DNA of 64,000 nt from Histomonas meleagridis 2922-C6/04-290x (GCA_020184695.1 JAANOX010000014.1:1-64000), one strand, 5' to 3'; counted from the stretch's first letter, positions 13,860 through 41,518 are shown. Numbers and translations: made by a program. The notes: generated from the letters alone by a model not told the origin.

Positions 13860-14709
13860 GATTTGTTATGATGGCAAAAACTTTTTGTGAGCCAATATTC
13901 TGAACAGCACTGATCATTTTTCAAATATTTTCTATGATTATAGAAAATTCTGTAGTAATTGAGTGCTGGTTTTTGGTTTTGGTAAAAAACCGTTATTTTG
14001 ACCACTTTTTGCAAAGCGAGTCCGATAAAGTATCGTGCGTTTAAATTCAAATCATGTTTGGCCAATCGTATGAGATGATTCATGATAAAAATCATCTATA
14101 AAATTTAATTTTAATAACCCTTTATTATTTTAAAATAGAAAATTATTACTTTCAAAATATATATGTGTATTTTAATCATGGCCATTAATTGTTTCATCCT
14201 GATTTGAAGAAACATTATTTTAGGATAATTTTTCTTAACGAAAATTCCAAAGCCATTCTTTGCAGCAATTCGTTAAGCACATATTTCCTCATTGTTCAAA
14301 CACTTAATAACAATAGCGATTGTCGTCCTTTTTAGTTTAAACTTTCATATCAATTTCTACTAAAATACATCTCTTGTGTTTGCGTATGGTTTTCTAAGAA
14401 TTCTATCAGATAATTCTTTTCAGATCTGATAATTTATAATTTTTCGTGATAATGAGGAAATTTGTGAATGTAATAGACATATATTTCTTATGAATAGTTG
14501 ATGGAATATATGTCGTGCTTTTTGATTTTTTAATTTAAAAATAATGGTAAAGCTTGGAAATGACCGTTAAAAGGAATTCGACACTTTACTCAAGCACATT
14601 TTGAACGTAACCGTCACACTCCAAAAAGTTCACGCGAAATAAAGTGGTTTCTTTCTTAAATTTCAGTATACACAGATTTTCTTCTCACAAAACAAAAAAA
14701 ATGTGAATA

Positions 14710-14717
14710 AACCGTTA
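14710..14717 (+). promoter_or_regulatory. M3-like (Myb-recognition-like) core promoter motif AACCGTTA
   Basis: The same (A/G)ACSGTT motif lies about 15-50 nt upstream of several starts (27183-90, 19893-900, 42225-32, 50867-74, 57612-19); it matches the T. vaginalis motif 3 class. Confidence 0.55.
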
Positions 14718-14732
14718 ACTATCGGGCAGATA

Positions 14733-16052
14733 ATGAGCACGCAAGAGGGAGTCATCAAACAAGGCTATGCAGGCAAACTTGGTGGTATTTTCAAAACATT
14801 TAGAAAGCGGTGGTTTGTTCTCCAAGGAGAAGAACTTAAATATTACAAGAAACCAGGTCATCGAGTTGTTGGGTTCATTAACATCAAAGAAGCAGAAGAA
14901 TTAGGGATTGATCCTAAAAGCAAACATCAAAATGGTATATTTATACGCGAAATCAAACGAGTTCATAACATTCTTTATTCCACACCACAAGAAGCGCAAG
15001 AATGGTTAAAAGCATTAACAATAGTTAAACAAGGTGTTAAAAAAGCAGATGTTAAAATCACAGATTTTACTGTTCTTAAAGTTATTGGACGAGGAGCTTA
15101 TGGTAAAGTTCAATTAGTTCGACATAATGGTGATGGCCAAATATATGCGTTAAAATCATTATCGAAACGTCTTTTAGCACAATATGATCTTATTGGTCGT
15201 ACATTAACAGAAAGGAACACGTTAATTACAGCCAACCATCCATTCATCACGTCAGCGCGTTATTCATTTCAATCAGACACCAAATTATTTTTAGCGTTAG
15301 AATATGTTCCCGGTGGAGAACTCTTTGCGCGACTTCGCGAAGAACGAAAATTTCCAGAGCATCGTGTTAAACTTTATGTTGCTCAGTTAACACTTGCGAT
15401 TGGATATTTACATTCTATTGGTATTATCCATCGAGATCTTAAGCCAGAGAACATCTTAGTTGACAAAGATGGATATCTTAAGATTACAGATTTTGGTCTT
15501 GTTAAAGAGAAGATGAACGATAGTAATGCCAAGACGAGCACATTCTGCGGCACACCAGACTACATTGCGCCAGAGATGATTCTTTCCAAGCCATACAACA
15601 AGTCAGTTGACTGGTGGTCGATGGGTATTCTTACTTACGAAATGTTATATGGCTATCCTCCATTTTACAATTCGAACACCAATGCGATGTATCGTGCGAT
15701 ATTAAATGATCCATTGGAATTTCCGAAAGGCGGTACAACGTACGCGAAGGACTTCATCAGCCAACTTCTTAATCGAGACCCAGAGAAAAGACTTGGCTCA
15801 GGCCCGACAGAAGTCGAAGAGATCAAAATGCATCCGTTCTTTTCAGACGTTGACTGGAAACAACTTCTTCTGAAGGCGATTCCAATGGAGTGGAAACCAG
15901 ACTTGAGCAGCACAACAGACACGTCGCAGTTCGACAAGGAGTTCACAGAGGAACAGCCAGTTGTGTCGTATGAAAACCCAGACTTAATCAGCTCAGAAAC
16001 ACAGAAAATGTTGGAAGGATTCACAATGGAGAACACAAATGTTATTGACTAA
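14733..16052 (+). CDS. PH-domain AGC-family Ser/Thr kinase (Akt/PKB-like), intact copy
   Basis: N-terminal PH domain (KLGGIFKTFRKRWFVL...WLKAL), [35 protein letters not shown], and an AGC C-tail ending LEGFTM. The likely start is ATG 14733, shared with copy 2. Confidence 0.95.
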   Translation: MSTQEGVIKQGYAGKLGGIFKTFRKRWFVLQGEELKYYKKPGHRVVGFINIKEAEELGIDPKSKHQNGIFIREIKRVHNILYSTPQEAQEWLKALTIVKQGVKKADVKITDFTVLKVIGRGAYGKVQLVRHNGDGQIYALKSLSKRLLAQYDLIGRTLTERNTLITANHPFITSARYSFQSDTKLFLALEYVPGGELFARLREERKFPEHRVKLYVAQLTLAIGYLHSIGIIHRDLKPENILVDKDGYLKITDFGLVKEKMNDSNAKTSTFCGTPDYIAPEMILSKPYNKSVDWWSMGILTYEMLYGYPPFYNSNTNAMYRAILNDPLEFPKGGTTYAKDFISQLLNRDPEKRLGSGPTEVEEIKMHPFFSDVDWKQLLLKAIPMEWKPDLSSTTDTSQFDKEFTEEQPVVSYENPDLISSETQKMLEGFTMENTNVID

Positions 16053-16728
16053 GGCGAATTTATTTAAATTTGGCGAACATCCAAACGAAATAAATAAAAA
16101 AATAAACGGAACAAATAAACGAATTCTTTTGAGATAAACTAATAGAAAAATAACAAAAAGTGAAAAGTTTCCAACTTTGGACTTCCAAAACAGAATTAGC
16201 TTTAGTTTTAATGGGGTTCTCAATTTATTATAACATTTGCGATAAAGGAAAAACATTTTATTATACTTTTTAAAAAATAATTTGAGCATTTTTAATGTGA
16301 ATTATAAATGTTATATCATTAAATGAGTTTCTGAAAAAGCCAATATTTATCAACACTATTTAGTTTTATCAATTTTTAGTTATGTTAGACAAAAAAAAAT
16401 GATATACTTCTTGTAACAAATTAATTTGGATTTAAATTTAATTAAAGAGATATATATTTATGACTAAATTAAAATGGGACATATTTTATAGTCGCAAGAG
16501 CTTATGTGTTGATAAATATTTTTTCAGCTAGTCATGAAATTGTAATTTACCAGCACATTTTCATATTTTATTACCATGCCTTCAAATATTTATACCCAAC
16601 GATATTCCCCATCTTAAAGTTATTTAAACACATTCAAAGTTAAGATTTCCTATTTCTGGAATCATCAAATTGAGTCGTAGATTTTGATTTGAAACTTTTT
16701 CAGAAAGTTTTAATCCGGCCAGCAGAAA

Positions 16729-18084
16729 ATGACCAGCACAGACGAAGAAAGAATTCAAAAAATTCGAACCCAGATATTTGGCGAAAAGCCAGACCCTAAA
16801 ATGAAGTTTGCTGTGAAAGTTTGGAGAATTTTACAATATACATCAAATTCACCAGAAGATGTCGGAATTGTCGGTGCTTCTTGGTGTAAAGATGGTGTGC
16901 ACTTTATTGCGCACACACAAATACTTGCAAATTTTTTGGCATTAAAACCAAATTCAATCAATACAAATTTTCGAAAACATTACTTCAAAATTGAAGAAAG
17001 TAACTTCTACGAAATTATAGAAGAGTTCAAAGCCGTCCAACTTCCTGATACAAAAAATTGGAATAAGAGAGTAAATTGTCAATTTAATTTCACGAAAGAT
17101 TCAACAGAACAAGAGATTATGTCAATTCCAATCTGCAACAATATTCCAAAAATAGTAGAAATCAAACCAAAAAATAGTTTACTTCCACCAAATACATTAA
17201 CATTACTTTTTGATAATGATGACATGCAAAGAGATGTACAAAACTTATTTTCCAAGGTATACGGTATGTCTGAATCATGGAAAATTCAATTTCTTGTACG
17301 TGCCACAGATGAATGGCTTATTTTTTCTTCATCAAATCTTGAGGTTGATTTTAAGCAATTTATTCAAGCAGTCATTGAAAAGACGAGGGATTTTAAGCAA
17401 ACAATAAACTGGGAAGTTCTTGAACCAAATATTGTTGATCTATTACTTGGTAGTAATGGTTTATCTCAACGATCTGATAAGGTAACGTTCCTTGATTTCC
17501 TCTCTTTTGAGCTTCGTTTTGGTTTTCTTGATCAAATTGCAGCCAGCGTAAATGAGATATGTGATAAAAGTGACACTTCTGACGGTTTTAGTGAATTTGG
17601 TGACACTTTTCCGACATCTCAACTATCACAAAATTCATATTTCGATCAATATTTCTTTCAACAGTCCCAACATCCTTGCTTTGCGATATGGTTTTTCCCA
17701 TCTAACGATCAAAACATGTCAGTAAGTTATATGAAAGAAAAAAATCTTAATTGGTTGCTTCGAATGGCTTCAACGCATCCAAACTGTTTTACAATACAAG
17801 TTATGAAGCAAGACGAGATCGGAGATGAAGGACTTATTGCAACATATATAATGGTAGATCCATTAGCAGATGAAAATGAAAGATTACTCGCAGAAACATC
17901 ACAAGGAAGTTACACAAAAGCACGAAATTGGAAACAAATGATATCGGAATGCTTGAATTTGCAGTTCCCAGTGATGGCCGGACGACCATTGGAAAGAAAA
18001 AGCATGAAAAGAGTACCGGCAGACATTGTCGCAAACAACGAGGCAGAAAAGAAGAAGCCAGCGGTGTTCGATCTGGGATTTTAA
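16729..18084 (+). CDS. IBP39-family initiator-binding-domain (winged-helix) transcription factor with extended C-terminus
   Basis: N-terminal KFAVKVWRILQY...VGASWCKDG..F....ILANFLALKPNSINTNFRKHYF matches the IBD pattern (F..KL..LL...IGL.W...F...A..MG.K.N.LN.N.R...F). VTFLDFLSFELRFG resembles the IBP39 C-domain. Confidence 0.8.
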   Translation: MTSTDEERIQKIRTQIFGEKPDPKMKFAVKVWRILQYTSNSPEDVGIVGASWCKDGVHFIAHTQILANFLALKPNSINTNFRKHYFKIEESNFYEIIEEFKAVQLPDTKNWNKRVNCQFNFTKDSTEQEIMSIPICNNIPKIVEIKPKNSLLPPNTLTLLFDNDDMQRDVQNLFSKVYGMSESWKIQFLVRATDEWLIFSSSNLEVDFKQFIQAVIEKTRDFKQTINWEVLEPNIVDLLLGSNGLSQRSDKVTFLDFLSFELRFGFLDQIAASVNEICDKSDTSDGFSEFGDTFPTSQLSQNSYFDQYFFQQSQHPCFAIWFFPSNDQNMSVSYMKEKNLNWLLRMASTHPNCFTIQVMKQDEIGDEGLIATYIMVDPLADENERLLAETSQGSYTKARNWKQMISECLNLQFPVMAGRPLERKSMKRVPADIVANNEAEKKKPAVFDLGF

Positions 18085-18199
18085 AGATTATTTGGAAATA
18101 AATTGTGTTAAATAAAAAGAATCTTTGTAGTAATTATCGTAAGCATGATAAAATGGATGAGAAATGATTCATTATAAAATAAATTTTCATTATCAAAGA

Positions 18200-18953: not shown

Positions 18954-19865
18954 TTAAGCGAAGTAACCAGGAATTTGTTCTTTTGGAATTACTCTTTGTG
19001 AATCAGGGACAGCTTCGAACACCTTAAATTCACACTCCAAGTTCTCGTCTACGTTCATAATCGATGCTTTGTTCCCAGATCGATACATATAATTTGGTGC
19101 TGACCAAACTGTAACAAGTTGTTTTCCGCCGAAGTGCCATTGATAGCCCTCCATAGCGAGTTGGTGCGCACGCGCAATCATTTTTAGACCATTGTTGTGG
19201 CAAAATTCTTGGGTAGGTCTAATTCCAAATAAATATCCGGCACCGCGCTGACTTGTTCCCCACCCTTGGATATCCTCGGGATCACTCCAGCAAATGTCAC
19301 AGATGGGTCCGCTGCTCGGAATTTCGGCACGACGCTCAAAAAGTGCAACTTGATCAACTAATTTAACAGCTGGGCTAAGTCCGCCATGAACACAATAAAG
19401 TTTGTTGTTAATAAGAGCTGCCATTGGCAATAAATCAAAAACTTCGTTACATAATTTCCATGGTCCCGCATGACCAAATCTTAATACTATTTCTTCATAA
19501 AAACCATATAAGGTATTAACTTGTCTACACTCATGGTTGCCACGAAGCATATAAAATCGGTCGGGATATTTGACTTTGTAAGCAAGAAGAAGTGCAAATG
19601 TTTCGATTGAATAATAACCACGATCAACATAATCTCCAAGGAATAAATATTTGGTGTTTGGAGGATCGCCACCTACTTCAAAGAGTCGGAAAACATCATA
19701 AAGTTGACCATGAACGTCACCACAAACAGTTATTGGTGCTGTTAAATTAAGTAAAGTTCCTTCTTGAAATAGGACATCTTGAGCGATTCTAAACAAGCAA
19801 ATTAACTCTCTTTCTTCAAAAGGTTTATGTGCTTTGATTGCTGCAATAAGTTTGTCCAAATCCAT
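18954..19865 (-). CDS. PPP-family Ser/Thr phosphatase catalytic subunit, PP4/PP6 (PP2A-like) type
   Basis: GDVHGQ, GDYVDRG, RGNHE, HGG, RAHQL and WSAPNY motifs; likely start ATG 19865. Confidence 0.95.
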   Translation of the reverse strand: MDLDKLIAAIKAHKPFEERELICLFRIAQDVLFQEGTLLNLTAPITVCGDVHGQLYDVFRLFEVGGDPPNTKYLFLGDYVDRGYYSIETFALLLAYKVKYPDRFYMLRGNHECRQVNTLYGFYEEIVLRFGHAGPWKLCNEVFDLLPMAALINNKLYCVHGGLSPAVKLVDQVALFERRAEIPSSGPICDICWSDPEDIQGWGTSQRGAGYLFGIRPTQEFCHNNGLKMIARAHQLAMEGYQWHFGGKQLVTVWSAPNYMYRSGNKASIMNVDENLECEFKVFEAVPDSQRVIPKEQIPGYFA

Positions 19866-20019
19866 TTTTAAAAGGTGAACAATAAACTCCAAAAACCGTT
19901 TTTAAGTTAACGTATATTGTATTTGTAAAGCATTGAAAATGTTTTGGAAAACGTTTAAAGAATTTTTTAGTTAATCACTTGGAAATCCTTCCAAAGTTTG
20001 TAAAAAAAAGCTTTTGAGT

Positions 20020-40798: not shown

Positions 40799-41518
40799 TT
40801 AATCCGCTTTTTGCATATCTTCGACAAGGAAGAGTGGAAGGCAACAAAATGGGTCATCAAAGAACGACAAAACATCAATGGACTCCGAGTTAGCCATCAT
40901 TTGCTTTTGTGGGTATAAAGGAACAGCTTGTGGGAGATCAACAATAGTTTCCTCAATACATGGTGATGAGAAAGTATATGACTTAGAATGAGGTATTTCT
41001 TCAGTAACTAATGGATTTGGTGTTACTGGTGAGTAATTCTTAATATGCCATTCTCTGGCAAAGTTTTGGTCCGACTCAAAGAGAGGAATATACTTGCAGA
41101 GCTCACTTAAAGGTCGAGCTGATGTCATGAAACCTATTTTCTTTAAAGATCGATTCAAATCAGAATTCGAAATTTTGAGTAATGAACAAAGTTGTCTGTT
41201 ATTTACCGCAATACCGGATGGTATCCAAAAGATACCGCAAGCGATAGCTCTTCTCCATTCATTTTCACCTCCGGTTTGGATGAAATTTTTGATTTCGGAA
41301 ATTTTCTCCGAAAATGTCTGTTTGCTTTCTCTGATCCTTCTCTTGAGCTCGTCGAACAAGTACTCTTCCTCGCCAATAAGTCTGATTTGATTGTTCCTGG
41401 CAAAGCCGATCTGATCTTCCATCTGTTTTATGGAAAGTGAAAAACGGTTTTGAAATTGATGATTATTTATCACCGAATTGAAAACGTTATATTGTTTTTG
41501 TGTTGGAAAATTTTTCAT
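40799..41518 (-). CDS. Parabasalid IBD-related winged-helix DNA-binding protein
   Basis: TFSEKISEIKNFI...WRRAIACGIFWIPSGIAVNNRQL..LLKIS.S.LNRSLKKIGF matches the expanded trichomonad IBD subfamily; C-terminal FFDDPF. Confidence 0.7.
   Translation of the reverse strand: MKNFPTQKQYNVFNSVINNHQFQNRFSLSIKQMEDQIGFARNNQIRLIGEEEYLFDELKRRIRESKQTFSEKISEIKNFIQTGGENEWRRAIACGIFWIPSGIAVNNRQLCSLLKISNSDLNRSLKKIGFMTSARPLSELCKYIPLFESDQNFAREWHIKNYSPVTPNPLVTEEIPHSKSYTFSSPCIEETIVDLPQAVPLYPQKQMMANSESIDVLSFFDDPFCCLPLFLVEDMQKAD

Follow-up and report, generated by a model that had tools for sequence, protein, structure and literature searches.

The window analysed here is a stretch of 64,000 nucleotides from Histomonas meleagridis 2922-C6/04-290x (GCA_020184695.1 JAANOX010000014.1:1-64000); the source genome comprises 43.1 Mb in 281 contigs, and the G+C content of the window is about 17-39%. 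Positions 16729-18084 (+) hold a complete, uninterrupted single-exon open reading frame of 451 amino acids plus stop codon, a paralog of the IBP39 family of transcription factors. Full-length homologues are 45% and 29% identical to its product, and the homologues align from residue 1 (alignment A1). An earlier sequence-only reading of this DNA had named the frame, quoted several motifs from it, and singled out an arginine, R345; translation reproduced all of these at the correct bases. The segment at 17476-17523 encodes DKVTFLDFLSFELRFG, and 17752-17772 encodes WLLRMAS, which makes 17761-17763 (+) the codon of R345. The stretch WFFPS...FTIQV corresponds to residues 321-358.

Transcript evidence came from four runs of 7-30 million letters that contain this stretch and whose classification as RNA is a guess only. 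Between positions 15000 and 20000, the RNA-like contigs cover the gene bodies and leave the intergenic DNA at a depth of 0-3. A single contig spans 16745-18133 in run X2 and 16737-18162 in run X3; the contig from run X5 stops at 18133, with an A-rich tail beyond. We annotated 18085-18133 (+) as the 3' untranslated region, with a poly(A) addition site near 18133, where the contigs of two runs end. The pattern fits a polyadenylated mRNA that ends 49 bases past the stop codon. The contigs start 8-16 bases inside the frame, which we attribute to end loss in assembly.

The neighbouring genes are also covered by RNA-like contigs. Upstream, a frame at 14703-16108 (449 amino acids) resembles a PH domain plus an AGC-type kinase; contigs of three runs diverge at 16108, all into the same unlike letters, which fits a second, near-identical kinase copy elsewhere. 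Downstream, a frame at 18954-19892 (-; 312 amino acids) carries the PPP-family Ser/Thr phosphatase motifs GDVHGQ, GDYVDRG, and RGNHE. That the factor gene has a kinase gene on one side and a phosphatase gene on the other is probably a coincidence.

The N-terminus of the 451-amino-acid protein is an initiator-binding domain (IBD), a winged helix at residues 8-114 (16750-17070, +), which a linker connects to a C domain of two parts. This domain had been proposed before, and Pfam model PF10416 recovers it with an E-value of 1.2e-14 and 54.8 bits (cut-off 25). The stretch N-x-I-N-T-N-F-R, residues 75-82, falls in invariant columns of alignment A1. When the single sequence was used as phmmer query against the PDB, only the IBD was matched, by structures 1PP7 and 1PP8 (E 0.019); these are the IBD structures of Trichomonas vaginalis IBP39, whose C-domain structures are 1Q87, 1Q88, and 1Q89. 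At least 108 IBD matches were found genome-wide, most of them in frames of 200-370 amino acids that have no clear SH2 module. A second IBD in the window lies at 41030-41350 (-; E 2.8e-27), inside an open frame of 244 amino acids.

A word-based search returned four full-length relatives with 29-45% identity; two further paralogs occur in the same genome, on contigs C218 and C37. The profile of the region following the IBD (alignment A2), run against 1.84 billion representatives, retrieved 130 clusters at E<=0.001, 40 of which reached E<=1e-30. The profile was then divided in three (IBD, helical, and SH2-like); 81 of the 131 retrieved proteins contained all three modules, and 71 of these 81 are at least 380 amino acids long. 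All named relatives are from parabasalids, namely TVAG_428240 of T. vaginalis G3, TRFO_20635, TRFO_32686, and TRFO_24436 of Tritrichomonas foetus, and members from Tritrichomonas musculus. None of the 30 family clusters that were looked up is annotated as containing SH2; they are named "hypothetical protein" or "Initiator binding domain-containing protein". A survey of IBD paralogs carrying the module had been proposed in the sequence-only reading. In this genome the SH2-like profile matched nine places, and six of these (on contigs C14, C37, C216, C80, C7, and C218) are intact frames of 437-476 amino acids with both the SH2-like part and the IBD. The remaining three are IBD-plus-SH2-like loci with short frames or in-frame TAA/TGA codons (C280:221382-222356, C11:652725-653749, and C32:216464-217458), probably decaying paralogs or assembly frameshifts.

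The SH2 domain occupies residues about 318-416 (17680-17976, +) and consists of βA with the residues WF, αA, βB with R345, βC, βD, two short strands, and αB. An SH2 pattern after an EF-like part had been noticed from the sequence, and both the family profile and structure prediction with fold search bear it out. As a single sequence, residues 321-364 matched Pfam SH2 (PF00017) with 12.4 bits and an E-value of 0.17, below the cut-off of 21; 6 of the 87 family members reached this model individually at E<=0.01 (best 7.1e-8). A profile of seven close homologues had 55 PDB matches at E<=10, all SH2-containing and led by SHP2 (E 3.5e-6). The profile of 98 SH2-like segments (A4) matched 122 distinct PDB sequences at E<=0.01, and the best 60 of the 122 are all SH2-containing proteins; SHP2 gave the best E-value, 7.7e-12, and RasGAP gave 1.6e-9. 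Against single domains, the E-values were 4.5e-6 for the SH2 of CSK, 6.3e-6 for that of PLC-gamma1, and about 2e-5 for the N-SH2 of SHP2. The family consensus W-F-x-P...A...L...W-x-V-R-p-S-x-x-P-N-x-F-T-L aligns to βA, αA, βB, and βC of SH2.

An AlphaFold2 model of residues 147-451, calculated from an 87-sequence alignment without templates, had a mean pLDDT of 87.7 and a pTM of 0.85, with one poor connector (model residues 140-165). The predicted structure has the central antiparallel sheet flanked by αA and αB that defines an SH2 fold; the sequence-only reading had named the lack of such a fold as its refutation, and the prediction goes against that outcome. In a Foldseek search against the PDB, the model matched the IBP39 C domain (1Q87/1Q88/1Q89, E 1.4e-5 to 1.7e-4) and dozens of Cbl tyrosine-kinase-binding (TKB) structures, with E-values from 1.6e-4 (2Y1N) up to about 1e-2; the matches listed in the whole-model PDB searches are only the IBP39 C domain, Cbl TKB, and SH2-containing proteins. 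The resemblance to SH2 and EF-hand domains could in principle be due to chance, with matching motifs in a fold that is specific to the lineage and unrelated to SH2, an explanation that can point to the single-sequence Pfam score below the cut-off and to the helical domain, which has no sequence-level match. The calibrated profile E-values, with SH2 proteins only among the matches listed, and the independent structure-based searches leave this explanation a negligible probability, and for the SH2 part we regard it as refuted by the A4 profile search and the whole-model fold search. Judged by homology, the C-terminal part of the protein includes a genuine SH2 domain, chance being excluded.

Residues about 154-277 (17188-17559, +) form an EF-hand-like helical domain of two helix-loop-helix units with a short strand in each loop. 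When residues 147-285 were modelled alone, the pLDDT was 91.4, and the three-residue loop strands were at E59-61 and E105-107; the predicted topology is that of an EF-hand pair. The segment DKVTFLDFLSFELRFG (17476-17523) provides the second loop strand (VTF) and the exiting helix. Its likeness to the Cbl EF-hand, remarked on earlier, was found at the level of the fold only, through structure prediction and fold search. The helical half alone, searched against 48,161 chains, matched the Cbl EF-hand first and IBP39 next, and the remaining matches listed were mostly EF-hand proteins (sorcin, AtCBL2, ALG-2, KChIP, centrin, S100 proteins, troponin C, and calmodulin). A helical-domain profile built from 83 sequences gave nothing significant among PDB sequences (best E 0.13, to unrelated proteins); the EF-hand likeness is therefore one of structure. 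Inspection of the two loops (residues about 202-207 and 246-257) revealed no D-x-D-x-D...E calcium-ligand pattern, and calcium binding by this domain is thus unlikely. The connector between the EF-like domain and the SH2, residues about 280-316 (17566-17676, +), is of low complexity and probably disordered (pLDDT 48-62 in model blocks 141-170); its length varies within the family, and it falls in gapped, variable columns of alignment A1.

In the model, the EF-hand pair lies directly before the SH2 domain in a TKB-type orientation and packs against it approximately as in the Cbl TKB domain. Cbl is the best non-parabasalid structural match of the C domain (its TKB structures include 2CBL, 3OB1, and 6XAR); the alignments begin at Cbl residues 159-180 and leave the Cbl four-helix bundle unmatched. 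The 451-amino-acid protein differs from Cbl further in lacking a RING or E3 part and, on inspection of its EF loops, any acidic calcium-ligand pattern, and in having extra strands after βD in the SH2; the sequence identity is about 13%, and the EF part has no sequence-level link to Cbl. The best sequence match of the SH2 profiles is SHP2, whose N-SH2 likewise opens with W-F-x-P, an uncommon start, and has the R-P-S / P-x-x-F-T-L pattern in its βB-βC hairpin. The HMMER alignments show this similarity only over the first 50-60 domain residues, and the protein context is unrelated, SHP2 being a phosphatase. Spt6 has tandem SH2 domains (3PSJ/3PSK, 6GME), whereas the protein described here has a single SH2 joined to a DNA-binding domain; Spt6 was not among the sequence-profile matches listed, which SHP2, RasGAP, CSK, and PLC-gamma led.

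We mapped the positions of the phosphate pocket by the SHP2 and Src register and took family counts from alignments A3 (n = 87) and A4 (n = 98). In the HMMER alignments, R345 falls on R32 of the SHP2 N-SH2, the phosphate-binding βB5 arginine; the sequence-only reading had placed a retained βB5 arginine at about this residue. Across the family, βB5 is Arg in 47 and Lys in 10 of the 87 sequences in A3, and Arg in 53 and Lys in 6 of the 98 in A4, that is, Arg in about 54% of the members and a non-basic residue in about a third. The family tree implies at least 10 changes of state at this position. With Arg in little more than half of the members and this many changes, phosphate binding is not a family-wide constraint. 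At the auxiliary positions, the 451-amino-acid paralog has Q328, A347, Y373, and M375 instead of the canonical αA2 Arg, βB7 Ser, βD4 His, and βD6 Lys, so that at least three of the four are non-canonical. The corresponding family counts in A3 are 25 of 87 (29%) with Lys or Arg at αA2; 71 of 87 (82%) with Ser at βB7; His 37 (43%), Tyr 16, and Arg 11 of 87 at βD4; and 30 of 87 with Arg or Lys at βD6. T355 in βC has the residue found in 51 of 87 members, and S348 and T349 lie in the BC loop, where Ser and Thr are common. Only R345 and the BC-loop Ser/Thr survive of the canonical pocket in this paralog. Two relatives have more canonical pockets: this genome's paralog on contig C37, with R, S, H, and K, and TVAG_428240, with R, S, and H.

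In the raw counts, a basic βD6 went together with the βB5 Arg (Fisher p 6e-4), and a basic residue in the BC loop with its loss (p 1.3e-5). These associations did not hold up in a phylogenetic check: the family tree contains only four supported independent pairs, and we dropped co-variation of pocket residues as evidence. From the residues present, phosphate binding appears plausible for a subset of the family. For the 451-amino-acid paralog it is uncertain, and a dependence on phosphate is less certain here than in paralogs with complete pockets, such as the C37 copy and TVAG_428240.

The architecture had originally been likened to that of STAT. Its components (the IBD, the EF-hand-like domain, the SH2 with its βB5 Arg, and the Cbl likeness) held up in the profiles and the predicted structure; the STAT-like reading proved weak. 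Such a reading would imply a switch in which a kinase phosphorylates a tyrosine, and reciprocal SH2-phosphotyrosine dimerisation controls nuclear entry or DNA binding. The protein does resemble STAT in being a DNA-binding protein with the domains in STAT order, the DNA-binding domain being followed by an EF-like helical domain and then the SH2, and STAT clusters of the Atlas align with the model over 167 residues (TM 0.39-0.40 by query, rmsd 4.5-4.6). The STAT matches found, to these Atlas clusters and to Dictyostelium STAT, are all weaker ones. However, the DNA-binding domain is a winged helix; before the C domain, Pfam detected only the IBD and no STAT DNA-binding domain, and coiled coil, N-domain, and conserved C-terminal tail tyrosine are missing, with no Tyr at all after residue 395. 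We did not retain STAT as the closest fold: none is among the best 50 matches listed of either whole-model PDB search. In phosphotyrosine-binding SH2 domains, αA2, βD4, and βD6 clamp the phenol ring; these positions are Q, Y, and M in this protein. A six-frame scan of the assembly for classical tyrosine phosphatases (PF00102) returned none at E<=1e-5; although this does not prove their absence, it argues against a metazoan-style phosphotyrosine circuit. Given the weak STAT matches and the lack of a conserved tail tyrosine, we consider a STAT-like switch very improbable.

IBP39 is a textbook example of a lineage-specific core-promoter factor. The Pfam model of its C domain (PF11422) scored 19.7 bits against the 451-amino-acid protein, below the cut-off of 25. 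Genome-wide, this model had 19 matches at E<=0.01, 12 of which cover most of the model (11 in open frames of 329-400 amino acids, the twelfth interrupted by two TGA codons); the remaining seven lie in short frames and match just the last 40-odd model positions. An hhalign comparison of alignment A3 with A6, built from four IBP39-type C domains encoded in this genome, gave a probability of 95.5% and an E-value of 1.3e-8, with 165 aligned columns running through both halves. Because the match extends across both halves at this E-value, we treat the IBP39 C domain and the EF-like plus SH2-like module as one homologous unit. The module is no alternative to the IBP39 C domain; the two are the same module. 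In the A3/A6 alignment, the IBP39-type proteins have no αA segment and have Phe at the position of the βB5 Arg. By this comparison, the crystallised IBP39 C domain is a degenerate form without αA and βB5 Arg, and the SH2-bearing subfamily is better preserved. Compared to IBP39, the 451-amino-acid protein is about 100 residues longer, with a disordered insert between the halves, and has a full SH2, including αA and the W-x-V-R-x-S strand, as well as a conserved tail motif. A paper from 2022 describes IBP39 as having no homology to other transcription factors (PMC8871863). In the literature covered, we found no paper linking IBP39 or IBD proteins to SH2 or Cbl; the likeness may already have been recognised in the 2003 structure paper or in a structure classification. 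The IBD family and the IBP39 C-domain structure were already known; what is added here is an SH2 domain in a new architecture and a reinterpretation of that C domain.

IBP39 is reported to bind the C-terminal domain (CTD) of RNA polymerase II (PMC8871863, PMC2734056). The Rpb1 gene of this genome, a frame of 1736 amino acids on contig C69 (locus L008:178-957, -), ends in about 21 perfect YSPTSPS heptads. In a whole-genome scan with Pfam SH2, the sole match was C211:46155-46781 (-), with 25.3 bits; it belongs to an open frame of 1377 amino acids that is presumably Spt6 (SH2_2, E 9.5e-43). Spt6 is known to dock on phosphorylated Rpb1 (PMC5599234). On account of the CTD binding of IBP39, the YSPTSPS heptads, the docking of Spt6 on Rpb1, and the scan that returned no classical tyrosine phosphatase, RNA polymerase II is the likeliest partner of the C domain. 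We think it probable that the gene encodes an expressed IBP39-family factor that combines an IBD with a Cbl-like EF-SH2 unit homologous to the IBP39 C domain, and that this factor docks on polymerase II, where R345 may enable phosphate recognition. The IBD would bind an initiator-like promoter element, and the EF-SH2 unit would be the protein-docking end, the likeliest target being the CTD or the linker that precedes it; with R345 and the Ser/Thr of its BC loop, the SH2 would be able to recognise a phosphorylated residue. Classical phosphotyrosine signalling appears less likely than a reading of phospho-Ser/Thr/Tyr on the polymerase in the manner of Spt6. A complex prediction that paired the C region with a 170-residue piece of Rpb1, comprising linker and first heptads, scored 0.00; it had no controls, phosphorylation was outside the model, and it is no evidence either way. 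The Rpb1 heptads are preceded by degenerate SP-rich repeats. The CTD of T. vaginalis has been described as non-canonical (PMC2734056), and a canonical CTD in a parabasalid Rpb1 may merit attention.

Docking can also be independent of phosphate, since IBP39-type relatives, reported to bind the CTD, have Phe at βB5. Under this explanation, the domain is a true SH2 homologue whose ligand is an unmodified polymerase II segment, or else TBP or some other factor, R345 being a relic or structural. The missing αA of the IBP39-type C domains, the three of four non-canonical auxiliary residues in the 451-amino-acid paralog, the third of the family with a non-basic βB5, and the genome scan that returned no classical tyrosine phosphatase all agree with it. 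The close orthologues P0002 and P0003, however, retain R345, and Arg is the majority residue at βB5 among sequences that share only about 20-25% identity. The βB7 Ser is likewise kept in most of the family, and the nearest sequence relatives are phosphate-binding SH2 domains. We give phosphate-independent docking a substantial chance, though one short of even.

If the SH2 domains with intact pockets read phosphorylated Rpb1, promoter recognition would be tied to the polymerase's phosphorylation state. Placing the IBP39 C domain in the SH2 superfamily suggests a concrete mechanism for docking on polymerase II, through the SH2 peptide groove and possibly dependent on phosphate. The family adds a group of SH2 proteins in a deep-branching eukaryote, missed by the whole-genome Pfam SH2 scan, which detected only Spt6. 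The canonical form with Arg persists in a family found in several parabasalids, among them tractable proteins for experiments (TVAG_428240 of T. vaginalis and TRFO_20635 of Tritrichomonas foetus).

A Cbl-like EF-SH2 in parabasalids also bears on the time of origin of the EF-hand plus SH2 unit common to Cbl and STAT. As a tentative and somewhat doubtful extension, this unit may be ancient and present in Metamonada, and parabasalids may have fused it to the IBD; where the pocket is intact, the SH2 would recognise Rpb1 phosphorylated in the CTD heptads or the linker, and IBP39 would be a derived form that lost its dependence on phosphate. If so, these proteins would constitute a second, independent class of SH2-bearing transcription factors.

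The C-terminal tail of the 451-amino-acid protein carries a conserved motif of the type R/H-V-x-A-D/E-x-V at residues about 427-436 (18007-18036, +; columns 520-535 of alignment A1). It is modelled with a pLDDT of about 92 (model block 281-290) and includes a short helix at 285-289; at this pLDDT, the motif is predicted to be docked on the folded part. It could serve as a pseudo-ligand of the SH2 groove.
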